Shown piece by piece: positions 8,301 through 18,874 of a DNA stretch of 64,000 nucleotides. Within the stretch, counting starts at the first letter, position 1. Each line of letters opens with the position of its first letter. Source of the DNA: Obrimoposthia wandeli (lineage: Eukaryota); the NCBI GenBank assembly GCA_977020255.1, contig CDROCS010002432.1, positions 62,001 through 126,000 on the forward strand, in the 5' to 3' direction. The notes beneath the pieces are model-generated. The model made no database searches. It was not told the DNA's origin and saw only the letters and a list, made by a program, of their open reading frames with translations. A program made the position numbers and the translations under genes.

Positions 8301-9138
8301 GCGCTTTAAGTTTTGGCACAATTTCGGCCATAACACGTGCTTCATGAGTAAACTCGTAACGAGGGTGAATAGCTGAAAGTTTTACTGAAATACCAGGCAC
8401 TTTGCGTGGGTCATTTTTACCCGAAGCACGAGCAACTTTACCAATGGCTTCTATCGCCACTTGATAAGCTTTAAAGTAACGGTCAGCGTCGCCCATTGTA
8501 CGAGCACCTTCACCTAGCATATCGTATGAATACACATAACCTTGCTGTTCTTTGGTGGCGGCACGTTCAGTAGCGGCTTTAATGGTTTCGCCCATAACAA
8601 ACTGCTTACCCATAATTTTCATGGCGTAGTTCATTGATTTTCGAATAACCGGCTCACCTAAACGTCCGATAACTTTTTTCAATAAACCAAAGCCATCTTG
8701 TTTACGCTTGTCAGCATAATTAACCATAGTGCCGGTGATTAATAAGCCCCATGATGAGGCATTAACGAATAATGAATCACTACCACCTAAATGGGCGCTC
8801 CATTGGCCTTGCGAAATTTTGTCACGAATTAACGCATCTTGCGTATGTTTATCTGGTACGCGTAATAGCGCTTCCGCCAAACACATTAATACCACACCTT
8901 CTTCACTTGAAAGTGAGTATTCTTTTAATAAAGCATCTATTGCGCCGTTGCCTGCCTGGTCTTGACGAATTTGCAAAACCATTTTGCGCGCTCTTTCCCA
9001 AGCCCTACTTCTCGCACTAACATTAACCTCAGCTAAAGGGAGAATATGATCTACCGCTATATTTTCATCAATACGATAAAATTCACGTATTCTCTGACGA
9101 ATTGGGCAGTCTGTGATAAACGAACCGTTAAAAAGCAT
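5314..9138 (-). CDS. putA: Bifunctional proline dehydrogenase / P5C dehydrogenase PutA
   Basis: EGVVLMCLAEALLRVPD, SYDMLGEGA, RLVKGAYWD, YPQFATHNA, YLVRRLLENGANSSF, ISPWNFPLAIF, AETGGQN, SAGQRCSALR, PFGGRGLSGTGPKAGG. Confidence 0.97.
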   Translation of the reverse strand: MLFNGSFITDCPIRQRIREFYRIDENIAVDHILPLAEVNVSARSRAWERARKMVLQIRQDQAGNGAIDALLKEYSLSSEEGVVLMCLAEALLRVPDKHTQDALIRDKISQGQWSAHLGGSDSLFVNASSWGLLITGTMVNYADKRKQDGFGLLKKVIGRLGEPVIRKSMNYAMKIMGKQFVMGETIKAATERAATKEQQGYVYSYDMLGEGARTMGDADRYFKAYQVAIEAIGKVARASGKNDPRKVPGISVKLSAIHPRYEFTHEARVMAEIVPKLKALCIQAKSYNIGLTVDAEESERLDISLDIIEAVFSDSELSGWDGFGIALQAYQKRAIFVVDWLRELTVRVDRKMMVRLVKGAYWDSEIKNAQKDGHQHFPVFTRKSSTDVSYHACANKLLEYRDTIYPQFATHNAYTAATIVELAGDDKEGFEFQCLHGMGDSLYDQIVSGENIQCRIYAPVGHHEDLLAYLVRRLLENGANSSFVNAIVDESQPVESLLEDPVEKTQRLKDKYNNQIIKPIALYHDAKGLGRDNSKGLDLTDISVITPLKASLDNWFVDNLLNKNDVPDGAVAVKNPANHSEIIGFHHHHSKEDMLAMIDTAQATFASWSKTPVTERAALLCRVADILERHTDELIALCIKEAGKITQDGIDEVREAVDFCRYYAERAIDIAADERLEARGVVLCISPWNFPLAIFLGQVAAAIATGNTVLAKPAEQTSLIALRTIDLMKSVGLPEGVVQAVIARGSEVGRVIVPDERVQTVMFTGSTQTGTVISQTLADRGGDQVPFIAETGGQNCMIVDSSALPEQVVDDVISSGFQSAGQRCSALRVLFLQEDIADDVITMLKGALAELHVGNPAKLSTDIGPVIDQKALDALNAHSDYMQTHGKLLYQCAISDEVADNEHFFFAPRLYEINDISVLKQEVFGPCVHVVRFKGNEIESVIDNINGTGFGLTMGIHTRIEHRAFDLAKLSRAGNVYINRNMIGAIVGVQPFGGRGLSGTGPKAGGPNYLTRLVIEKATPDAEQFNLLPSQVEALDGDDQSDKESILFMDKANAAEKNWRLTELNTRISCVRQLLAKIAHVGIVDDLADDLNRTLTSARSQLIDIEKRLKKPTFLPGPTGESNILYLENRGNIICFADATVSFHFWVLSIVTSLATGNTVISVVSDLYYDEAIAFRDKFLSTGADEGVFQVARLRHLSTMLSHPALAGVVVDSHCDRKHYISEKLAEREGAILPVISSEYFDSLIQRLLTEKTISIDTTASGGNTSLMTLVEED

Positions 9139-9914
9139 GTGCTTTCCTCAAAATGGCTAAAAAGTAGCTTGGTACTAATTAGGGATAGTTGCAATAGAAT
9201 TAATTCGTGCATTCTAATGAAAACTTAGCCGGATATGCTAGCTAAATTTAGCTTTTTATCCATTTAAAATTTTGCCAAAGCACGATACGCCCGTAGAATA
9301 TTTTTTATATCGGATATTTAACATATATAAAACTGAATAAAAACAAGCAGAAACATGAATGTAAAGGCCAAAATATACTCGAAATAATTTTTATTGTTAG
9401 CCATTAATTCAGCTTATATATCGAATAATAGCTCTTATATTTTCAACGTTTAGGCATTTAAATTATCTTACTGTTTGCTTTTCAGCTTCACTCATTATCT
9501 AACGAGATAAAAAATAGCTCAGAAGCTGTAAAGTAGCACCTTTATATCATCTTATTACAGTAAAATTTTAAGCACTGAGCACGCTTTGTTTTAGTTGATT
9601 TATATCTTACTGATTTTAAATTTGAAAAATATAACTCGCCATTATTTTAGTCTTTTCTGTGTCATGTTTTTTGGATTTTTGGGTATATAAAGATTTAATT
9701 TGTTGAACATATTAAGGTAACCGGCAATGCGAATTTAGTCATGAGGCAGGTTGCAATGAATGATGACTATTTGCCGTAAATGGCTTTAAATAACCGCGCA
9801 ATTATTTTTTAAGGGAAAACCAAGTTGGTGGCTATTTTACTGGTGATGATTGTTAGTAATATAAACTATGTGATACTTTGCCATTTTGTATGTTGATTTT
9901 ATGGCAGAACAAAA

Positions 9915-10745
9915 TCAATAGTTACACTGATTAAATACTCCTTGCTCAATCAAGTATTTACGCCAGTGCTGCCAAAGCTCTTCTATTGCTGGTTTGCAGT
10001 AATCGTTTTGCTTAATTAGTACTTGTTTGGTCTTTGTAATGTCTTGTTCACTCAATAAGGTTTTAATAAACAAATGTTGGCCGTAATTTAAGTCTATTAG
10101 GCCTAAACGATAGTTTCGACGAATGATTAAGCCATAGCTTGTTTTGGGCTGCGCAAGCTCAGGCTGATGTTGGGCATTAAATGCCCGGTAATATTCTAGA
10201 ATCGGGTGTTTATGACAAAGAAGCTTACATACAGGAACTAAACTTAATTGTTTGTCAGGTGTATCAAGCTTTGCTTGTATTTGCTCATGGTCTAATGCGC
10301 TGTCGGGTATTTCTTGATCAAACAAGTGATTTAAATCAGCTTCGAAATCAGCTAGTTCAATCATAAAGTCAGGCCAGTCTTCTTTTACTTCCTGTTCGGC
10401 GTCGGGGCGTGTTTGCTGCAAAAAGTGACTAAAACCATCACCAAGGTTATTCAAACTATAATGCTTTGACGGATAGCTATGTAAATACTGCTGCACAAAC
10501 AGTTGGAAAATTTCATCGCCTAAAGCAAACTTTAAGGCACTAAATTGATTAGCCATACATTGTTGTAGCCGCATGACATAGCTGCGCTGATAGATACCCA
10601 AATGCGCTTTAGCCGACATTCTAGCTGATGAATTTATTTCCTTATTGATAAAATTTTGCTGTTGCTCTTGTAACCTCGAGCTTAATAATATTTGCTGCAT
10701 TTCCGCTTGTAGCACTGATAAATGACTGTTTAGTAGAAGCTTCAT
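9915..10745 (-). CDS. DUF2063 / HvfC-BufC-like MNIO partner protein
   Basis: LGIYQRSYVMRL...FSALKFALGDEIF...YLHSYPS.HYSLNNLG..FSHFL motif; start overlaps the DUF692 stop (ATGA). Confidence 0.85.
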   Translation of the reverse strand: MKLLLNSHLSVLQAEMQQILLSSRLQEQQQNFINKEINSSARMSAKAHLGIYQRSYVMRLQQCMANQFSALKFALGDEIFQLFVQQYLHSYPSKHYSLNNLGDGFSHFLQQTRPDAEQEVKEDWPDFMIELADFEADLNHLFDQEIPDSALDHEQIQAKLDTPDKQLSLVPVCKLLCHKHPILEYYRAFNAQHQPELAQPKTSYGLIIRRNYRLGLIDLNYGQHLFIKTLLSEQDITKTKQVLIKQNDYCKPAIEELWQHWRKYLIEQGVFNQCNY

Positions 10746-11764
10746 TTTTCTAGCTCACAAGCGTGAAAACGATTTTGCTCGCTAACAATAAAATCTAGTG
10801 GATTAGATAACGGGTACTGTTGAGTCACTGCTGGTTGAAACGGGCCTTTTTTTTGAAAAAAATCGTCGGGTAATTTAGCCATAAATTGTTTAGCTTTTAA
10901 CAGTTCTTGGTGATAAACCTCAAAGGTAGGGATATTTCCGTCCCACTCTAAGCTAGTCGCACAGCCATTGGTTAACTGCCAAGCTAAATTAAATAACGCC
11001 CATACGTCCTGAGTGACTGCACTGTCGTGAGTATCGACAATATGATCGCCACAATGCTGATGCCCCGCTAAATGCATTTGCACTATGGCGTGATGCGGCA
11101 AGCCTTTGATATAGGTAATAGGATCAAAGTCATTATTAAATGCCGATACGTAGACATTATTGACATCTAGCAGCATACCGCAGCCAGTGTCAGCGACTAA
11201 GGCACTAAAATACTCCCATTCAGGAATGGTTGACTGGGTAAAGCTTAAGTAAGAGCTAGGGTTTTCTAGTATTAAAGGTCGCTCTAAAATGTCTTGTACT
11301 TGCTTAACGCGAGAGCTTACATGTGCCAAAGACGCTTCAGTTAATGGTAAAGGCAATAAGTCGTGAGTATTTAAGCTCATCGCACCGGTCCAGCAAAGAT
11401 GATCACTGACCCATGCGGGTTTAATTTCGTCGATAAGTTGCTTAAGCTTGGCTAAATAGTCGAGATTTAGTGCATCTGTACTGCCAATAGATAAAGACAC
11501 GCCGTGCATAACAATGGGGTAGTGTTCTGCTATTTGTCGTAAAATATGGCGCGGTCTACCGCCAGAATCGATAAAATTTTCAGAAATAATTTCAAACCAG
11601 TCTACATCAGGTTTATTTTCTAAAATGGTATTAAAATGTTGGCTGCGTAAACCAAGGCCAAGACCTAGATTAGTTCCAATTTTGGCCTTAGTCTTCATTT
11701 CTGAATTTGTTACCTGTGCTGGTGACTGTGAGCATATATCAACAATGTTAGTCGTTTTCAACAT
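10742..11764 (-). CDS. DUF692 multinuclear non-heme iron oxidative enzyme (MNIO)
   Basis: GLGLRSQH, WFEIISENF, HGVSLSIG, WVSDHLCW, HDLLPLP, LENPSSY, LLDVNNVYVS, MHLAGH, DTHD, LEWD motifs. Confidence 0.93.
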   Translation of the reverse strand: MLKTTNIVDICSQSPAQVTNSEMKTKAKIGTNLGLGLGLRSQHFNTILENKPDVDWFEIISENFIDSGGRPRHILRQIAEHYPIVMHGVSLSIGSTDALNLDYLAKLKQLIDEIKPAWVSDHLCWTGAMSLNTHDLLPLPLTEASLAHVSSRVKQVQDILERPLILENPSSYLSFTQSTIPEWEYFSALVADTGCGMLLDVNNVYVSAFNNDFDPITYIKGLPHHAIVQMHLAGHQHCGDHIVDTHDSAVTQDVWALFNLAWQLTNGCATSLEWDGNIPTFEVYHQELLKAKQFMAKLPDDFFQKKGPFQPAVTQQYPLSNPLDFIVSEQNRFHACELEK

Positions 11765-11766
11765 GG

Positions 11767-12390
11767 CTATTTCTTGCTATCACAATCACATTCTTTCAAG
11801 GTGTCTTGTAACTCTTTTCGACTGCGCTCAACTAATGCTTGTGTGTTTTTTGCTGGGCTATTAAAGCCAAATGAACAAGACTTATCACCTGAACTACCAC
11901 ACGAGTCGTATTCTCCAAAGGTTTCTAACCAAGCTTGTGGCGGTCCTGCGGTAAAAGGCGCATCACCGACATTACGACGTGCTTTGTTCATGCGTTGTTC
12001 AAACAATTCTCGGGCAAGTAACCAAACACTTTTATTTTTATTAGCGCCAAGGGTACCAAAGCGCTCGGCTTGAATTGGTGTGGCACAGCTACCTTGCCAA
12101 GCGCAATCATTTGCTCCTGGCTTACATTGCTCTGCAGCATCGCCAAATAATCCGCAACCTCCTTGTCCTGCACAGTTATTCAATGTATGGCAAACATGCT
12201 TTTGCGTTGCACAATAACCCGTACCAGCACAATGATTACTACCGAAACGATCATGGCTTTTACAAGCGTTTAAGCCCATACATGCATGTAGCTCTAATGG
12301 TGTTTTTATATCAGCCGTGTCGCTTGTAGGAGCGTTTGCGGGTTGGCTGCCACAGCCATTACTTAAAGGTTTATCTTTTAATATCGACAT
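11767..12390 (-). CDS. Cys-rich repeat protein (15 Cys), candidate MNIO substrate; no signal peptide
   Basis: GAGGA RBS upstream; three N-x-C-A-x-x-G-x-C repeats and two H-x-C-x2-L-N-x-C repeats; stop lies 2 nt from the DUF692 start. Confidence 0.75.
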   Translation of the reverse strand: MSILKDKPLSNGCGSQPANAPTSDTADIKTPLELHACMGLNACKSHDRFGSNHCAGTGYCATQKHVCHTLNNCAGQGGCGLFGDAAEQCKPGANDCAWQGSCATPIQAERFGTLGANKNKSVWLLARELFEQRMNKARRNVGDAPFTAGPPQAWLETFGEYDSCGSSGDKSCSFGFNSPAKNTQALVERSRKELQDTLKECDCDSKK

Positions 12391-12418
12391 GTATTTATCC
12401 TCTAAAAGTTGGCTAGGT

Positions 12419-13819
12419 TTACGCCATTAATGGGCTTTTTGATTTTTCTAAAAAACCTTCTAGTGCAACATCAGGTAAATCTTTAATGCGCTGTTCAATA
12501 TAGGCTATGCCGCTATAGCCTCCTACGGCTTGATTGAATAGCTCGATAATTTGCGATTTAGGCGAAGATGCTTCATTAAATTGATACTCTTCATAGGTGG
12601 CTGTTGCTGTGTATTGCTTGCCGTCAGAACCGATATAAGTAAAACCTGTCATTTCGCCACATAACGAACTCAGGATCCACAGCATGGTTTTATGAATACC
12701 AAACATAAATATTTCAAATTGAGTGTGTTCATCAGCTCGATAACACGCTTGAGACATGATAAAAAGATAGCTGTAAACAGCATTTGTTAAAGTCGAGACC
12801 GCGGCGATAGCTGCAGGGTAGTCAGCAGTTTTGGCATTATCTGCAAAGTTATAAATAAAAAATTTATCTACTTCTATGCTTTTACCAAATACGGTTTTAA
12901 ATTCTTGTTTAATGGCGGCTAATTCGTCTTGTAATTGAGCAAATTTATAATAATGCGCTAATTCGTGATGCGAGCTGTCATCATCAGAGCCTTCACCAGC
13001 CCCTTCTCCTTGCTCAACAATAATAGCCAGTGCGGCAAGTGCGCTAGCTTGATCAACAACATGAATTAACCCACCGGCATCGGCTGCATTTTCATAAACG
13101 GGTTGATGGTTTTTATCGTAATAAATGGTGTCGATATTGTTTTGTGCGTAATACCCACGGTTAGGAACTAGCTGCGCACGGTCCGGGTGGTAATGTTTTT
13201 TATCACCATAATGTTGTTTAATACAGCGCTCTATACTTTTGTAGAACTCTCCTATGGTTAAATAAGGAATAGCTTTAACGTTTGCTAGCACTTTATCGAA
13301 AGGTTTAGGGCTTTCAATGAGTTTAAATGTTTCTAGCTGTTCGTGACTTAGTTTGGCGCGATTAATCGGAAAGGCTGGCTCATGACCCGCTAAATAAGCT
13401 GGCCATACGGTAGGAGATTTATTGACGAGCTCAGGATCACCAAACATAGCTTGCTTTACATTGGCCGCTAACGACATGTGCAACATTTCTTCAACCAGCA
13501 CGCTCATTACATTGGCACCGGCTTTATTCGCAAATACCATTATCTTGGAGGAATACTTTATCGATTGAGTCAGGGCTTGCTGTTCATTTAAGCCTTTAGC
13601 CAGCAGTATCTCTGTGAGCTTTGCTGCTATTGGTGCTTGTTTGGGGGTGCGATTAATCGAGTAGTAAGTTGATAAATAGGTGGGTAAAGTGGCAATCTCT
13701 ATTTCTATCGCTTGTTGCAAGGCTTGGTTTATATTTTCAGGCGTTATATCTGTCACGCCACTTTTCAAAAATTGAGTTTGCATTTGCGTGTCCTTGTTGT
13801 AAATGTTCATGATAAACAT
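12419..13819 (-). CDS. Ferritin-like domain protein (VioB C-terminal-like ferritin family)
   Basis: LQQAIEIEIATLPTYLSTYYSI, VEEMLHMSLAAN, TIGEFY, IVEQGEG and LAHYYKF motifs supply a diiron-type E/ExxH/E/H ligand set. Confidence 0.82.
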   Translation of the reverse strand: MFIMNIYNKDTQMQTQFLKSGVTDITPENINQALQQAIEIEIATLPTYLSTYYSINRTPKQAPIAAKLTEILLAKGLNEQQALTQSIKYSSKIMVFANKAGANVMSVLVEEMLHMSLAANVKQAMFGDPELVNKSPTVWPAYLAGHEPAFPINRAKLSHEQLETFKLIESPKPFDKVLANVKAIPYLTIGEFYKSIERCIKQHYGDKKHYHPDRAQLVPNRGYYAQNNIDTIYYDKNHQPVYENAADAGGLIHVVDQASALAALAIIVEQGEGAGEGSDDDSSHHELAHYYKFAQLQDELAAIKQEFKTVFGKSIEVDKFFIYNFADNAKTADYPAAIAAVSTLTNAVYSYLFIMSQACYRADEHTQFEIFMFGIHKTMLWILSSLCGEMTGFTYIGSDGKQYTATATYEEYQFNEASSPKSQIIELFNQAVGGYSGIAYIEQRIKDLPDVALEGFLEKSKSPLMA

Positions 13820-14729
13820 GCGGTTATTTAATTTTTACATCGATTTTATTTCTGCTCACTACAATTTTTATCTCTGCAACGTCTTTGGGCATGGCAACTA
13901 GATAATGTAACGGAGATAAATTAATTTTTACTGTAGGCGAACAAAAAACAGGCCAACACAAAACAATTTTATTGCATAACTTATGGTTTTAATTGTTTAT
14001 TAATGCCGACTCTCATAACGCCAATTTTTCTGACCAAACAATAGACATAAATAGCAGATAAAAATATTACGCGTTATTACACGAGGGGGAATTTGAATTG
14101 AATTGGAGCTGAAATCACAGATGACGGTTAAGAAAAGGTTAAGTAAATAAGTTGAGCCATATAAGATATATTCGATTGGCTTGAGGGGCCTATTGAATGA
14201 GGTTATCTCAGCGGGTATATACCAACTAACTTATCGATTTTTAGCTTTTTGATAGGTGTAATACGGTGTAATGGTTTCTTTTTGTATTCCTTATAGACTG
14301 ATACTGTAGAATTGTAATAGTGAAGCTGAACGTTGATTTTATATTTAGACTTAGGCTTAGACTTTTATATCTAGGTTGATGAATACTTACATTTAGCTTG
14401 ATGTTTAGTTTAATATTTAAGTCATGCTCACTCAGGCAGCTTAAAGTTTCACTCTTAAGGCAACATTGTCGCAATTAATTGTCGTTAGTTACTATCAAAA
14501 ATAATCGTGCCAGCTTATTACTTGATAAAATAAGGCTAAGTAAGGCAAAATAAAGTGTGAGTAACAGTAAAATTTTTTTAGTCGATTTAATTGATTTAGT
14601 TGATTTAGTTAAGATGAATGATTACCTCCGAAATGTAATTGGAGGCTTGCTAAACGTTTATCTCTTATATCAGTGGGTATTATCACTTTTAATAACGTTC
14701 GCTGCTCGTGATATCAATATTAAGGAAAA

Positions 14730-15752
14730 ATGATGGCCGCTTTAATTAATAACCAAACTCAACAACATTGCCTATTACAGTCACATCATAGTTTTGGCCG
14801 ACTTAAAAGTTCAGTAAATGCCTTTATTGCTGACGCGGTTGTTTCTAAAGTGCATGCTTTTATTGAATGGCATGGTCAGCATTGGATATTGCGCGATGTC
14901 AGTAGCAATGGCACTTGGCTTAATGGTAATAAATTAGCTGGCGATAAAGTGGCACAACTGAATGTTGGCGATATCATTAACTTTGCTAGTAAGTCAGGTT
15001 ATGCCTTTGAAGTGCATGACATAAATCCTCCTTGTGATTGCCTAATTCCTGTTGCGCATGAGAGTGAAGCGATTGAATTAGAAGATTTTCATTTATTGCC
15101 AAGTGAAAAGTCACACAAAAGAGTACTAAGTTACAGTAACCGTACCTATTCGTGGTGGCAAGAAACCCTTGATGACAATCTAAGTCAGTCAAGTATGGCG
15201 GCTGAATTAAATGATCAAGAATGCTTAGATATTGATGGCCTAACCTGGCAATTACAAATAAACCGCACCATTGCGGATACCCAATTGCTCAGACCGAGTG
15301 TTACCTCACTTGATGAATTAACTTTTTTGTTTCAAACCAGTTTAGATGAAGAAAGCACCCATGTAGTGATGCAAAGTGGTGAAGAGCATATTGATTTACT
15401 CACTCGCAGCCACCATTACCTGACTCTTTGTTTAGCGCGTCAACGGGCTAAAGATATACAAGCAGGTTTAGATGACAGTGAGCAAGGTTGGGTCTATGCT
15501 GAGCTACTAGCGAAGGATTTAGGCTTTGATGCTAGTCACTTAAATATTCAAATTTACCGTATGCGTAAACAATTTGTTGATGCTTTAAATAACAGCTGCG
15601 AATCCAGTAACATTATTGAGCGTAGCGCTGGAAAACTGCGTCTGGCGAGTAAGTTCTTTTGCATCACTAAGGGCGATAAAGTTGAGTGTGATACCCGTCA
15701 GTTTTCTCAGCAAGACCTTAGTAATAGCGCTAATCAATACACGAATCATTAA
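14730..15752 (+). CDS. FHA-domain protein with C-terminal winged-helix-like output
   Basis: FHA motifs FGR, VSKVHA, DVSSNGTWLNG; C-terminal GWV...LAKDLG...HLNIQIYRMRKQF...IIER..G.LR resembles OmpR-type/wHTH DNA-binding modules. Confidence 0.8.
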   Translation: MMAALINNQTQQHCLLQSHHSFGRLKSSVNAFIADAVVSKVHAFIEWHGQHWILRDVSSNGTWLNGNKLAGDKVAQLNVGDIINFASKSGYAFEVHDINPPCDCLIPVAHESEAIELEDFHLLPSEKSHKRVLSYSNRTYSWWQETLDDNLSQSSMAAELNDQECLDIDGLTWQLQINRTIADTQLLRPSVTSLDELTFLFQTSLDEESTHVVMQSGEEHIDLLTRSHHYLTLCLARQRAKDIQAGLDDSEQGWVYAELLAKDLGFDASHLNIQIYRMRKQFVDALNNSCESSNIIERSAGKLRLASKFFCITKGDKVECDTRQFSQQDLSNSANQYTNH

Positions 15753-16018
15753 ACAATTTATCGGTATTGTTAGTAAAGCCATGCAATGAATATTGTATGG
15801 CTTTTTTATTATTTATTGTAGATTATTTACTTTAGTTTCAGCACTGTAATCGCGTAATAAGCTTTACAGCCCGTCATTATTTTTTAGTCACTGTTTTCTA
15901 GTCATTATTGCTAAGAAATAAGCGCTAATAAGTAAAAGTCGACATCTTGCTATCATCATGTGATCATTGCTTTATAACAATAAAGCGCAATCAAGCATTG
16001 ACTTGATATGGTCAGACA

Positions 16019-18874
16019 GTGAAAAAAACAAAGCCCGTTAATCAGCCTAACCGCATCAATAACACTAATCACAGTGATGACGTAAGTCAGGACTGTGACA
16101 CTATTGCTATATCTGTAGCGGATACCTTGTGTGATCAGCAAACGTTGCTTTCTGATGATCAACAAGCTGAAAAGTTACAGCAAAGCAGTATGGCGCACTT
16201 TAAAATTATCGATATTTTAGGTAAGGGCGGTATGGGCGCGGTTTATAAAGCGAAAGATTTGGCGTTAGAGCGCTTTGTTGCCATTAAAATGCTCCGTATC
16301 AGTGATGCGAATCAACCTTTGATACTGGCTGAAGCTAAAACCATTTCTCAGCTTAACCACCCTAATATTGTCACGGTTTATGATATTGCCCGTGATGGCG
16401 ATGCTAATTTTATTGTGATGGAATGGGTTAATGGTCTGCCACTTGATCGTATGATCCCCCCGCAAGGTTTGGCGCTTAAGGTGGTTATTGATTATGCCAA
16501 GCAAATGGTAGCGGCTTTAGCATGTGCCCATCAACAACACATTATTCATCGTGATATTAAACCACAAAATATTATGGTTGATATTAATGGCCGCATTAAA
16601 GTGCTCGACTTTGGTATTGCTGCACTTATTGATCCAAATAAAGCAAAAATAACGCCTTCAGCAATACAAACGTCGTTTACTGACGATAATCTCGTTGCTG
16701 AAGACATTAAGCATCACACGCTACCAAGTCGCATTGAAGGCTCGCCACAATATATGTCGCCAGAGCAAGTGCTAGGACAAGCAAGTGATGCGCGCTCAGA
16801 TTTATTCTCCCTTGGTATTGTTTTGTATGAAATGCTAACGGGTGTTAAACCATTTTTGGGTTTGAATTTACCGCAAATTAGACAGGCTATCAGCCTTGGC
16901 GAATATACCTCTTTAGCCGAGGTTGCCGCTGAACGTAAAGCCGAAGCTAAGGCTGAGCATAAGGTAGAGAGTAAGGCAGGGCATAAGATAGAGAGAAAGG
17001 CCGAAGGTAATACGGAACAAAAATTAACATTGCCCGCTGAATTAATCGCCGTGGTTGATAAGTTATTACAAACAGAGCCATCAGCACGCTATCAAAATGC
17101 TACAGACTTAGCACAAGATATTGATGTTATTGATCGCGTGGTTAACCATAAAAAAAATTGGTGGCAACAACAACATTGGTTAATCAAAAGTTTACTAATT
17201 ATTCCTGTTATCGCTACATTAGCGTGGAGTACGCGCAGCATTCTATTCCCGCCTAGCACCCAAGAATTAATTGCTCGACAGTTAGTTGAAGCGAAGAAAA
17301 TTGCTTTTTTACCGTTCGAAAATATTAGTGGTGACCCGGTGCTACAAATATTCAGTGACGGTATCGCCACTATGCTCAGTAGCGATTTAGCGGAAGTGGG
17401 TTATCAGCAAGGTGATGGTAGCACTTGGGTATTACCCGCCAGTGAAATAAGACGCCTTGACGATCCTAGCGTCGCCGGTATTTATAATAAATATGGCGTA
17501 GATACCGTTATCACTGGCAGCATTCAACACATGGGCTCAACCCGCAGTTTGCACCTGAGTGTGGTCAATGGCGCCGATGGCCGACAGTTAAAGTCGCTGC
17601 AATTAACCTTAGATGCGGAAAATTTGTTTGCCGCGCAACGGGACATTCGCCAACAGGTAATCGAGTTACTCGGTTGGCAGATACCGGCAGCATTAAGCCA
17701 ACAATTTTCTGCGCAACAACCGGCTTTTGATGGCGCTTATAAACATTACCTACAAGGACAAGGCTATTTATATCGTTTTGATCATGGCGATAATATTAAT
17801 AAAGCGCTTGAATCGTTTCAGGCAGCGATTGATCTTGATCCTAGTTATGCTGATGCTTATGTGGGGTTGGCTGAGGCGCAGTTGCGTAGTTTTATTGAAA
17901 AAAAGGATATAACTTTGCTGGCTTCAATGGCAGAAACGGTTAAACAATTGACAAAAATCGATAGCAATCACCGGCTGTTAAGTTATTTACGGGCTGAGAT
18001 GAAACTTAATCAAGGTGATTATGTGCAAGCGGTAGAGTTATTCAGCCAGAGTATTGCTTTACAACCAAGGTTTTTAAAGGCTTATACTGGTCTATCGACT
18101 TCGTATGCAAAGCTAGGTGAATCGATTAGGGCCGAAGAAGTACTATTAAAGGCTTATGAGATAATGCCCAATCATTATACCGTGGTGGGAAATTTAGGTA
18201 TATTTCACTTCAACAATGGAGATTATCAACAGGCAATTGATTATTTCGAATTACTGGCACAGCAAGCGCCTAATAACTATATTGCGTATCTCAATATTAG
18301 TGCTTGCCACTACCTTTTAGGTAATATTGAGCATGCTATTCTAGCAGCAGAAAAATCACTTGTTATTCAACCGAATGCTGATGGTTTCGCTAACCTTGGT
18401 ACGTACTACTTTATTCTGAGAGATTTTGATAAAGCGGTAGAGGCTTATGAGCGGATGATCACCTTAAATAATAGTGATTATATCAATTGGGGAAATTTAG
18501 CCGATGCATATCGTTTTGCTAATAATCCTCAATATATTGATACATTTCAGCAAGCAATCGTACTTGCTGAGCAGGCGATTGAATTAAATTCAAATAATAA
18601 AAATGCCATCGCCTCGTTAGCATATTATTATGCCAATCTCGACAATGTTGAAAATACACATTATTACGCTGAAAAAATTAGTAAAAAAGATGCTGGTGCA
18701 GATAGTGTTTTAATCGCTGCCGCTTACGTACGTTTGGGTATGAACAAAGCGGCGCTGAAGTATCTTAAACTTGCTACTAGTAATAACTATTCCCTTGCTG
18801 AAATTGTGAATTCGCCCTTATTTGATAACTTAAAAAATAACGTTGAATTTCAGCAATTAAAAAGTCTAAAGTAA
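16019..18874 (+). CDS. Hanks-type Ser/Thr protein kinase with one TM segment and C-terminal TPR region
   Basis: LGKGGMGAVYKA, VAIK, HRDIKPQN, DFG, GSPQYMSPEQ, DLFSLG; TM WLIKSLLIIPVIATLAW; IAFLPFENISGD (TolB_N/FlgO-like) followed by TPR helices. Confidence 0.93.
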   Translation: MKKTKPVNQPNRINNTNHSDDVSQDCDTIAISVADTLCDQQTLLSDDQQAEKLQQSSMAHFKIIDILGKGGMGAVYKAKDLALERFVAIKMLRISDANQPLILAEAKTISQLNHPNIVTVYDIARDGDANFIVMEWVNGLPLDRMIPPQGLALKVVIDYAKQMVAALACAHQQHIIHRDIKPQNIMVDINGRIKVLDFGIAALIDPNKAKITPSAIQTSFTDDNLVAEDIKHHTLPSRIEGSPQYMSPEQVLGQASDARSDLFSLGIVLYEMLTGVKPFLGLNLPQIRQAISLGEYTSLAEVAAERKAEAKAEHKVESKAGHKIERKAEGNTEQKLTLPAELIAVVDKLLQTEPSARYQNATDLAQDIDVIDRVVNHKKNWWQQQHWLIKSLLIIPVIATLAWSTRSILFPPSTQELIARQLVEAKKIAFLPFENISGDPVLQIFSDGIATMLSSDLAEVGYQQGDGSTWVLPASEIRRLDDPSVAGIYNKYGVDTVITGSIQHMGSTRSLHLSVVNGADGRQLKSLQLTLDAENLFAAQRDIRQQVIELLGWQIPAALSQQFSAQQPAFDGAYKHYLQGQGYLYRFDHGDNINKALESFQAAIDLDPSYADAYVGLAEAQLRSFIEKKDITLLASMAETVKQLTKIDSNHRLLSYLRAEMKLNQGDYVQAVELFSQSIALQPRFLKAYTGLSTSYAKLGESIRAEEVLLKAYEIMPNHYTVVGNLGIFHFNNGDYQQAIDYFELLAQQAPNNYIAYLNISACHYLLGNIEHAILAAEKSLVIQPNADGFANLGTYYFILRDFDKAVEAYERMITLNNSDYINWGNLADAYRFANNPQYIDTFQQAIVLAEQAIELNSNNKNAIASLAYYYANLDNVENTHYYAEKISKKDAGADSVLIAAAYVRLGMNKAALKYLKLATSNNYSLAEIVNSPLFDNLKNNVEFQQLKSLK
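16951..17008 (+). repeat. Imperfect 24-bp tandem repeat inside the kinase gene
   Basis: GGCTGAGCATAAGGTAGAGAGTAA / GGCAGGGCATAAGATAGAGAGAAA / GGCCGAAGGT encoding KAEHKVES-KAGHKIER-KAEG. Confidence 0.6.

Follow-up and report, generated by a model that had tools for sequence, protein, structure and literature searches.

Organization of the locus

The window, meaning the whole stretch of 64,000 nucleotides analysed here, contains four co-directional ORFs on the minus strand at positions 9915-13819 (ORF listing of the window). From the first gene to the last, they are spaced by 28 nt and 2 nt and then overlap by 4 nt. The ORF list agrees exactly with the four coupled genes, including the ATGA overlap, that had been described from the letters of this DNA (hereafter, the sequence-only reading). 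The features are as follows:

13820-14100, minus strand: operon leader and likely promoter region, with a block shared with locus L001
12419-13819, minus strand: ferritin-like protein (PF12902; VioB/RebD C-terminal type), 466-aa ORF, probable start at Met13 (13783)
11767-12390, minus strand: signal-less Cys-rich protein of the 'adjamnio-I' family, presumed MNIO substrate, 207 aa
10742-11764, minus strand: MNIO (DUF692) of the bufferin-maturase (BufB) type, 340 aa
9915-10745, minus strand: DUF2063/HvfC-type partner of the MNIO, 276 aa, its start overlapping the MNIO stop by 4 nt

Pfam searches upheld the domain calls of the sequence-only reading, with 353 bits for DUF692 (PF05114), 57 bits for DUF2063 (PF09836, cut-off 27.2) and 131 bits for the ferritin-like protein (PF12902, cut-off 22.3). 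As had also been noted, no DoxX gene or sigma/anti-sigma pair is present within ~10 kb of the four genes, and no transporter/exporter or protease gene was found in the same interval. The MNIO scored 351.9 bits with the MNIO_BufB model (NF050167, cut-off 310), and the HvfB, ApyH, MbnB and ChrH models each stayed below their own cut-off. Because MNIO homologues align only from ~residue 32, the start of this ORF and the 2-nt gap are less certain. The DUF2063 partner reached 40 bits with the HvfC model NF050145 over residues 42-248, below the cut-off of 142.

The region upstream of the first gene (13820-14100) is likely the promoter region of the operon. A block at ~14040-14100 is common to the window and to the Cognaticolwellia mytili locus (L001), and no Rfam family reaches threshold in 13820-14100. 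Marine metatranscriptome contigs, ~93% identical to the window, extend over positions 9926-14025 except for a hole at ~12890-13220, and neither flank of the operon is covered by any of them; the transcription evidence is limited to these contigs from a relative.

The ferritin-like protein resembles a redox enzyme

The first gene of the operon does have an ORF of 466 aa, as initially reported, but translation more likely starts at Met13, giving a predicted product of ~454 aa, because an AAGGA motif lies 7 nt upstream of this codon and homologues align from there. The AF2 model (pLDDT 85.6) has a four-helix-bundle core plus extra domains. Foldseek matched it to residues 594-999 of RebD (E 2e-9) and to residues 576-980 of VioB (E 6e-8), in line with the VioB C-terminal-type likeness proposed earlier. 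The fold is shared with PDB 3hl1 (CC_0557; Z 24 over 256 residues) and with the C-terminal halves of VioB, RebD and StaD, whereas the N-terminal half of VioB/RebD is missing from the window protein. An imine-dimer synthase of the VioB/RebD/StaD type (~1000 aa) was rejected, since the TIGR04492 model gave 17.9 bits against a cut-off of 1250 and only the C-terminal half was matched by fold. No established function was found for the PF12902 domain in any member, including 3hl1.

Matches to Dps, bacterioferritin and Mn catalase folds were also obtained, with Z ~10 over ~145 residues, a value within the common range for helical bundles. A ferritin/Dps iron-storage subunit, which is cage-forming and has ~160-180 aa and a ferroxidase site, is ruled against by the length of the product, its extra domains and the Z of only ~10. 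A comparison of 34 forms, split and fused, found no variation at E41, Y48, E111, H114, E169, E272 or H289, and E / ExxH / E / E / H constitutes a predicted dinuclear-metal-type ligand set. In other proteins, PF12902 is fused to CDGSH and 4Fe-4S domains. On account of its length with extra domains, the kept ligand set and these fusions to Fe-S electron-transfer domains, the protein resembles a redox enzyme more than a ferritin cage.

The Cys-rich protein has a bufferin-2-like core

The 207-aa protein holds 15 Cys, 11 of them invariant. Four regions can be distinguished: at the N-terminus, a short stretch bearing an N-G-C-G motif; a linker rich in Pro/Ser/Thr; a bufferin-2-like core with three C..C..C repeats, from Cys37 to Cys102; and, at residues 122-136, a conserved helix, after which comes a C164/C172 motif. 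Invariant positions include Trp123, Trp154 and several further aromatic or Gly residues, and the number of N-terminal N-G-C-G-S repeats and the Cys-rich tails vary among homologues. A Pfam search gave no match, and 539 homologues were found across phyla, with 57-85% identity among the 120 matches listed. Family members have 189-276 aa and 12-21 Cys. The absence of a signal peptide, claimed from the window protein, extends to the family: a hydrophobic N-terminal stretch was absent from this protein and from the 120 homologues (12-residue Kyte-Doolittle means over the first 45 aa do not exceed 1.5).

The BufA2 model (NF050166) matched 49 of 53 family members, all below threshold (best E 3.5e-6), and by these profile matches the Cys core is a distant relative of BufA2. 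The AF2 model of the 207-aa protein has a pLDDT of 56.7 overall, with confident helices at 122-136 and 179-202. Its Cys core is modelled at low confidence, so the model gives no structural support to a metal site.

Relation to known MNIO systems

Three of the four genes correspond to a set that has been listed before. 'Adjamnio-I' is a putative family of MNIO precursors (Cluster_I of Fig. 1d in Antoine et al. 2025, Microb Genom; PMC12452194), described in silico only, whose members have no signal peptide, 8-21 Cys and 122-293 aa, with genes that immediately precede those for an MNIO and a partner (PMC12452194). The window protein, signal-less and encoded 2 nt upstream of the MNIO ORF, belongs to the same family: the Cluster_I column (sheet Fig1D, PMC12452194) includes six homologues ~67-79% identical to it (WP_101093527, WP_126667678, WP_202286518, WP_013661250, WP_199476609 and WP_232359700). 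The first two fall into a single cluster at 90% identity; its representative and the window protein are ~79% identical. Window-type loci add a ferritin-like gene, often fused, which neither the text of PMC12452194 nor its available supplements mention. It appears that the trio of Cys-rich protein, MNIO and partner is already known as adjamnio-I and that only the link to a ferritin-like protein is unreported; of the candidate new system put forward in the sequence-only reading, this link is the part that would be new. Partners of adjamnio-I were assigned to 'PME-type 2', i.e. without the Pfam DUF2063 signature (PMC12452194), whereas all 21 family partners tested here match PF09836.14 (best E 8e-21; NGO1945_C was matched by 2/21) and are consequently not clearly 'type 2'. 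The Pfam version or threshold applied in that study is the probable reason for this discrepancy.

A further point of comparison is the Buf2 system of Caulobacter vibrioides (BufA2-BufB2-BufC2), in which the MNIO and the DUF2063 protein convert four central Cys into thiooxazoles that bind copper, bufferins guarding against copper by chelation (PMC11626156). The window has the same bufA-bufB-bufC layout, with a BufB-type MNIO and a DUF2063 gene directly downstream of the Cys-rich gene, and common Cys motifs of the C-x-G-x-N-x-C / G-x-G-x-C type. However, the BufA2 core has 61 residues and 6 Cys and is exported, with a Sec signal, in contrast to the longer, signal-less window protein with its 15 Cys, and bufferin clusters lack a ferritin-like protein. 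The window precursor also fails the BufA2 / Buf_6/12Cys signature (20.4 bits against a cut-off of 60), and as its similarity to BufA2 is far under the cut-off, its chemistry may differ from thiooxazole formation.

Oxazolins and bulbicupramide are MNIO products with EGKCG repeats (PMC11252979, PMC12538549). There, as may be the case here, an MNIO and a DUF2063 protein modify many Cys of a repeat-bearing protein, and the product may stay cell-associated; likewise, no protease is encoded nearby. Unlike the window protein, they consist of unstructured EGKCG arrays, carry a leader or signal and lack a ferritin-like partner.

Conservation of gene order, fusions and an exported sister clade

A relative of the Cys-rich protein is encoded in 295 species genomes. 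Eighty loci were fetched from Gamma- and Alphaproteobacteria, Bacteroidota, Acidobacteriota and Actinomycetota (counted as five phyla). The order ferritin-like, Cys-rich, MNIO, DUF2063 on one strand was found in 80/80 loci wherever the contig extends, with matches to the ferritin-like protein in 78, the Cys-rich protein in 80, the MNIO in 80 and the DUF2063 protein in 77. In locus L086 the order is permuted to Cys-rich, MNIO, DUF2063, ferritin-like. No other flanking gene in the 80 loci is conserved beyond genus level, and the neighbourhoods have no metal-responsive regulator, efflux pump or chaperone in common. Median identity over the 80 loci was 65% for the Cys-rich protein, 64% for the MNIO, 47% for the ferritin-like protein and 41% for the partner. 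Conservation of the Cys-rich protein at the level of the MNIO, above that of the ferritin-like protein and the partner, fits a folded functional module and not a disposable peptide.

The ferritin-like and Cys-rich proteins are also found as a single polypeptide. When the Cys-rich domain was clustered at 50% identity, 29 of the best 150 representatives proved to be such fusions, always with the ferritin-like domain at the N-terminus and the Cys-rich domain at the C-terminus; the co-occurrence and fusions that the sequence-only reading proposed to survey are both borne out. Arenicella sp. and Lysobacter brunescens are cultured isolates carrying a fusion. In the three fusion loci examined, MNIO and DUF2063 genes lie directly downstream (3/3). 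On a tree of the Cys-rich domain, well-supported FastTree branches force at least six fusion or fission events, and parsimony gives 15. The fusions lack the N-terminal N-G-C-G segment, so if this segment is a recognition leader, recognition differs in fused forms.

A sister clade (support 98) contains all the members with a twin-arginine signal or lipobox and zero fusions. The sole long context available for this clade (P0380) includes MNIO and DUF2063 genes and lacks a ferritin-like gene, and two further short contigs show no ferritin-like gene upstream; the comparison between the two clades thus draws on one long and two short contexts. The ferritin-like gene would thus be dispensable for maturing the shared Cys core. 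Since this clade combines the Cys domain with an MNIO and a DUF2063 protein, the MNIO appears to be tied to the Cys domain and not to the ferritin-like protein, and we infer that the 207-aa protein is the MNIO substrate. Fusion and synteny together argue for a functional linkage, but they fit 'subunit of' and 'substrate of' the ferritin-like protein alike.

A putative cytoplasmic metalloprotein with its own maturation machinery

We consider it somewhat probable, from these comparisons of genes and genomes, that the four genes form a self-contained module encoding a cytoplasmic two-part metalloprotein together with its own maturation machinery. The DUF2063/HvfC-type protein would present the signal-less Cys-rich protein to the BufB-family MNIO, which would oxidise a subset of the eight universally conserved Cys, most likely to 5-thiooxazole-type heterocycles by analogy with bufferins. 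Neither exported nor cut into a peptide, the matured Cys-rich module would be an obligate partner of the PF12902 ferritin-like protein, as a separate subunit in the window and as the C-terminal domain of the same polypeptide in many other bacteria, and would supply this enzyme with a soft-metal (probably copper) or redox site. We infer the kind of modification, the binding of metal, a physical complex and a physiological role for the module; for this role, metal or oxidative stress handling would be our guess. The cytoplasmic MNIO pathway with a second iron protein and a Cys-repeat scaffold that had been suggested from the window gains strong comparative support from synteny, fusions, the permuted order and the lack of signal peptides, while its 'iron store' option is disfavoured by the size of the ferritin-like protein, its ligand set and the Fe-S fusions.

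The ferritin-like protein could instead be a second tailoring oxidase that acts on the Cys-rich substrate before or after the MNIO to give a doubly modified cytoplasmic product, which we regard as unlikely. The fusions would then be enzyme-substrate fusions, as known for borosin-type self-modifying RiPP enzymes. In favour of this reading, two oxidative coupling enzymes, RebD and VioB, are among the PF12902 relatives through their C-terminal halves, a catalytic site would be expected to show such an invariant ligand set, and the four genes are always together with no other candidate substrate nearby; the invariant Trp123, Trp154 and other aromatic or Gly positions could be the targets. Nevertheless, the Cys-rich protein is the best conserved of the four over ~145 residues, including the helix and the C-terminal motif, which is more typical of a folded partner. 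Moreover, no protease or exporter is encoded to free a product, and the exported sister clade manages without a ferritin-like gene in the contexts recovered.

A cytoplasmic metal-buffering or storage island, in which the modified Cys-rich protein sequesters copper or another soft metal while the ferritin-like protein detoxifies iron or peroxide in parallel, in the manner of Dps or ferritin, and no specific complex forms, seems less probable still. Bufferins do protect against copper by chelation, in the periplasm (PMC11626156), and the variable N-G-C-G-S repeat number and Cys-rich tails recall metal-capacity modules. On the other hand, repeated covalent fusion in a constant domain order is unexpected for parallel actors. 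The resemblance of the bundle to Dps, bacterioferritin and Mn catalase is at a Z common for helical bundles, the ferritin-like protein is too long and too elaborate for a cage subunit, and the regulators, pumps or chaperones of metal homeostasis sought near the loci are not conserved there. Finally, the idea that the Cys-rich protein is no MNIO substrate and holds Zn or Fe-S through unmodified thiolates as an electron-transfer partner, the MNIO and its partner modifying the ferritin-like protein or an unlinked target, would suit the CDGSH and 4Fe-4S domains that occupy the position of the Cys-rich domain in other PF12902 proteins and the low-confidence model expected for a metal-dependent fold, but is very improbable given the bufferin-precursor position of the gene, the BufA2-like Cys motifs and an exported sister clade pairing the same Cys domain with MNIO and DUF2063 and no ferritin-like gene.

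Returning to the two-part metalloprotein, invariant synteny and recurrent fusion point to a ferritin-like enzyme with a metal-binding part built by Cys-oxidising chemistry. This chemistry is so far known from exported copper-binding peptides and would here serve a cytoplasmic enzyme. More tentatively, MNIO chemistry may build a protein-derived metal or redox cofactor domain, the Cys-derived heterocycles, alone or with copper or iron, supplying the dinuclear centre of a PF12902 ferritin-like oxidase with electrons or metal. If true, cytoplasmic metalloenzymes of this kind, two-component or fused, would be a class not recognised before, and the PF12902 domain would gain a first function.

The operon combines a ferritin-like protein with a candidate MNIO modification system

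Listing of open reading frames and family scans bore out the earlier description of four linked, co-directional genes on the minus strand.

Features of the operon and of the genes upstream of it
12419-13819, minus strand: ferritin-like gene (466-aa ORF; PF12902, 131 bits)
11767-12390, minus strand: Cys-rich gene (207-aa ORF; no Pfam family)
10742-11764, minus strand: MNIO gene (340-aa ORF; PF05114, 353 bits)
9915-10745, minus strand: DUF2063 partner gene (276-aa ORF; PF09836, 57 bits)
14730-18874, divergent from the operon: FHA-domain protein and TPR-containing Ser/Thr kinase

Spacers of 28 nt and 2 nt lie between the first three genes, and the MNIO and partner genes share 4 nt. In the ferritin-like ORF, the first ATG is at 13819. 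Since an AAGGA box is found 7 nt ahead of Met13 (13783), and since the closest locus, among homologues of 453-461 aa, aligns from Met13 onward, 13783 is a likelier start and the first ATG is probably not the true one. The MNIO scored 351.9 bits with the NCBIfam MNIO_BufB model, exceeding its cut-off of 310, and stayed under the cut-offs of the HvfB, ApyH, MbnB and ChrH models in the same scan. The 207-aa protein gave a sub-threshold match to the bufferin precursor BufA2 (residues 50-77, 20 bits for a cut-off of 60). As already read from the sequence, there is no DoxX gene and no sigma/anti-sigma pair; neither these nor a transporter or protease gene occurs within about 10 kb of the quartet.

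The quartet is conserved across five phyla

Relatives were sought in one genome per species; 295 genomes encode one, and 80 loci were fetched and searched by tblastn, with the window's four proteins as queries. All 80 loci have the order ferritin-like, Cys-rich, MNIO, DUF2063 on a single strand, with gaps only at contig ends (matches in 78, 80, 80 and 77 loci, respectively) and median intergenic distances of 33, 31 and 5 nt. The carriers belong to Gammaproteobacteria (Cognaticolwellia, Marinomonas, Alteromonas, Halioglobus), Alphaproteobacteria (one Erythrobacter MAG), Bacteroidota (many genera), Acidobacteriota (Pyrinomonadaceae, Holophagae) and Actinomycetota (Acidimicrobiia). Leaving out the two closest loci, median identities to the window proteins were 65% (Cys-rich protein), 64% (MNIO), 47% (ferritin-like protein) and 41% (partner). 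No extra genes recurred around the quartet in the 80 loci beyond genus-level synteny, seen in Mucilaginibacter and Kordia, nor was any regulator or transporter conserved nearby that could give a clue to its role.

In L086, a more divergent locus, the order is permuted to Cys-rich, MNIO, DUF2063, ferritin-like. This locus also has two YcaO-domain genes immediately upstream, in the same orientation (L086:1-3175). YcaO enzymes are makers of thioamides and azolines, and these two genes might add further backbone chemistry in that lineage.

All 21 partner proteins tested, from 21 loci, matched PF09836 (PF09836.14). The partners of this family, catalogued as adjamnio-I, were labelled "PME-type 2", i.e., without the DUF2063 signature, by Antoine et al. 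2025 (PMC12452194), who also proposed that DUF2063-signature partners accompany precursors with a signal peptide. With the current Pfam model, a signal-less family thus has DUF2063-signature partners, which fit neither the published label nor the rule; the association between signal peptide and partner type reported there may depend on which Pfam version was applied.

Flanking regions and expression

The operon is followed downstream by a PutA gene, and the divergent FHA and kinase genes lie upstream. Neither gene adjoins the quartet in any of the 80 other loci. As synteny around the quartet is elsewhere limited to the genus level, we place these two genes outside the module, to which they are probably unrelated. 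Between the operon end and putA, a 775-nt AT-rich stretch (9139-9914, ~32% GC) contains no ORF of at least 60 aa. A 910-nt intergenic region (13820-14729) separates the operon from the FHA gene and may be an operator or leader. It contains a block, ~14040-14100, that is also conserved in the Cognaticolwellia mytili locus and that comprises a hairpin with a T-run after it (14083-14070). An Rfam scan of 9100-14800 found no family near threshold, hence no known riboswitch in the long leader. A scan for promoter and terminator consensus sites was uninformative, with sites fewer than, or no more than, in shuffled sequence.

In one marine metatranscriptome, contigs sharing ~93% identity with the operon span 9926-14025, leaving a hole at ~12890-13220 and neither flank covered. 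They fit a relative's operon being transcribed together with a ~200-nt leader, with DNA carry-over possible; as contigs of a relative, they cannot prove a single transcript. One contig from a DNA run (X2) seems to link 9642 to 13816, skipping 4,173 nt, nearly exactly the operon. A mobile cassette was rejected, as the shorter side of this contig is only 21 nt and the operon has neither direct nor inverted repeats at its flanks; the join is probably a chance AT-rich match, a strain without the operon being possible.

The Cys-rich protein belongs to a signal-less family with a probably exported sister clade

A large-database search with the 207-aa protein gave 539 homologues, the best 120 of which share 57-85% identity with it and come from Gammaproteobacteria, Bacteroidota and Acidobacteriota. 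Alignments showed an N-terminus that varies and holds one or several N-G-C-G-S-like units, then a Pro/Ser/Thr/Ala-rich linker and a core of ~145 residues with 55 invariant positions. These include Cys37, 43, 54, 60, 67, 73, 79, 96, 102, 164 and 172, as well as the helix at 122-136. Family members are 189-276 aa long and contain 12-21 Cys. Among four homologues (P0045, P0037, P0041, P0275), the number of N-terminal (S/N)-x-C-G-(S/G) units varied from 1 to ~6, and some of them carry long C-terminal G-N-S-C-G-S-K repeat tails. The variable units and tails look like a tunable metal-binding capacity. The AF2 model of the Cys-rich protein (pLDDT 56.7) left the Cys core unresolved, with sequence relatives as its only fold matches.

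The sequence-only reading had described this candidate substrate as lacking a signal peptide, and a hydrophobicity scan extended this to the family: no member examined has a hydrophobic N-terminal stretch (top 12-residue Kyte-Doolittle mean of 1.5). Six homologue accessions are listed under Cluster_I in the Fig1D sheet of the supplementary table to Antoine et al. 2025 (PMC12452194). The trio of Cys-rich protein, MNIO and partner is thus already catalogued, though uncharacterised. The word "ferritin" is absent from the text of that paper and from the supplementary material examined, and no paper linking PF12902 or ferritin-like proteins with MNIO/DUF692 was found in the literature searched. Within that literature, both the obligate ferritin-like partner and the fusions seem to be unreported.

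More distantly related proteins of 155-180 aa have a twin-arginine motif followed by a lipobox (P0352, P0360, P0368, P0380, P0385, P0405, P0411) and are therefore probably Tat-exported lipoproteins; the UniProt entries of two call them twin-arginine signal proteins. They form one clade in the FastTree phylogeny (support of 98) with no fusion inside, and none reached the BufA2 cut-off. Among genomic contexts for six members, one was long and informative, two were short and partly informative, and three were too short. The long one (P0380) contains Cys-rich, MNIO and DUF2063 genes without a ferritin-like gene. Of the short contigs, two have no ferritin-like gene upstream and three no adjacent MNIO gene. 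The absence of the ferritin-like gene from the exported clade, as opposed to its presence in the signal-less clades, is suggestive, the sampling being thin.

Repeated fusion of the ferritin-like and Cys-rich domains

A search of the Cys-rich family profile against 1.84 billion representative proteins gave 388 matches. Among the best 150 of these, 29 are fusions with a ferritin-like domain, always with the ferritin-like domain N-terminal and the Cys-rich domain C-terminal; Pfam confirmed the 10 tested. Two cultured isolates, Arenicella sp. 4NH20-0111 and Lysobacter brunescens, encode fusions, and MNIO then DUF2063 genes lie directly downstream of the fused gene in all three fusion loci examined. 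A further independent fusion was found in AlphaFold DB, in a cluster bearing the annotation iminophenyl-pyruvate dimer synthase domain protein; its Cys-rich part spans residues 248-435. Few columns could be used for the FastTree phylogeny of the Cys-rich domain, which is therefore poorly resolved; fused forms are scattered over it in several places, and well-supported branches alone force at least six fusion/fission changes (15 by parsimony). The fusions start at the conserved Cys-rich core, without the N-terminal N-G-C-G segment, and the shortest also lack the C164/C172 motif. The minimal shared module therefore comprises eight Cys and the helix. None of the fused Cys-rich domains tested reached the BufA2 cut-off.

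The ferritin-like protein as a putative dimetal enzyme

The AF2 model of the ferritin-like protein (pLDDT 85.6) matched best a Caulobacter ferritin-like protein (PDB 3hl1, Z of 24 over 256 residues), followed by Dps, bacterioferritin, rubrerythrin and Mn-catalase bundles (Z ~10). Further matches are to the C-terminal halves of RebD and VioB, consistent with the VioB-type likeness seen before any search. PDB sequence searches with this protein and with a profile of the partner gave nothing meaningful, 3hl1 being found by fold search only. E41, Y48, E111-x-x-H114, E169, E272 and H289 are invariant across nine split and 25 fused, otherwise widely diverged forms. The protein looks like a dimetal enzyme. 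Fusions of PF12902 to CDGSH, 4Fe-4S and LodA_C domains are also present in the ESM Atlas. Overall, the comparison points to redox enzymology rather than iron storage.

A possible role in maturing a cytoplasmic enzyme

Comparative genomics supports well the initial idea of a cytoplasmic MNIO pathway with a second iron protein. The MNIO is tied to the Cys-rich domain, because exported and cytoplasmic clades both have it. Synteny, the permuted order and repeated fusion tie the ferritin-like protein specifically to the signal-less clades.

In Buf2, the four Cys at the centre are converted to thiooxazoles, and a disulfide joins the outer pair (PMC11626156). By analogy, the MNIO and its partner would oxidise conserved Cys of the Cys-rich module to thiooxazole-type heterocycles. 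The matured module would remain cytoplasmic and belong to the ferritin-like dimetal enzyme as one of its subunits or domains, where it would most plausibly provide a metal-binding or redox site. This is the most economical reading. Its main rival would make the ferritin-like protein a second tailoring enzyme with the Cys-rich module as its target; fusion and synteny fit both alike. Less likely are a loose "metal stress island" and a Cys-rich protein that is not an MNIO substrate. The quartet is placed among MNIO/DUF2063 Cys-modification systems, with a fair chance of serving the MNIO-dependent maturation of an enzyme.

MNIO enzymes are among the fastest-growing families in peptide natural-product biosynthesis and, to our knowledge, almost all their known substrates are short peptides or exported proteins. 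Here, a signal-less, highly conserved Cys-rich module is genetically bound to a ferritin-like protein, as neighbour or fused, in hundreds of species of five phyla. The system also qualifies the published rule tying DUF2063-signature partners to signal-peptide precursors. Tractable hosts such as Marinomonas mediterranea and Shewanella isolates carry the quartet. If true, the proposed role would bring the maturation of a cytoplasmic enzyme within the reach of MNIO chemistry and offer a way into the function of PF12902, a domain whose structure is solved (3hl1) and that is present in VioB and RebD.
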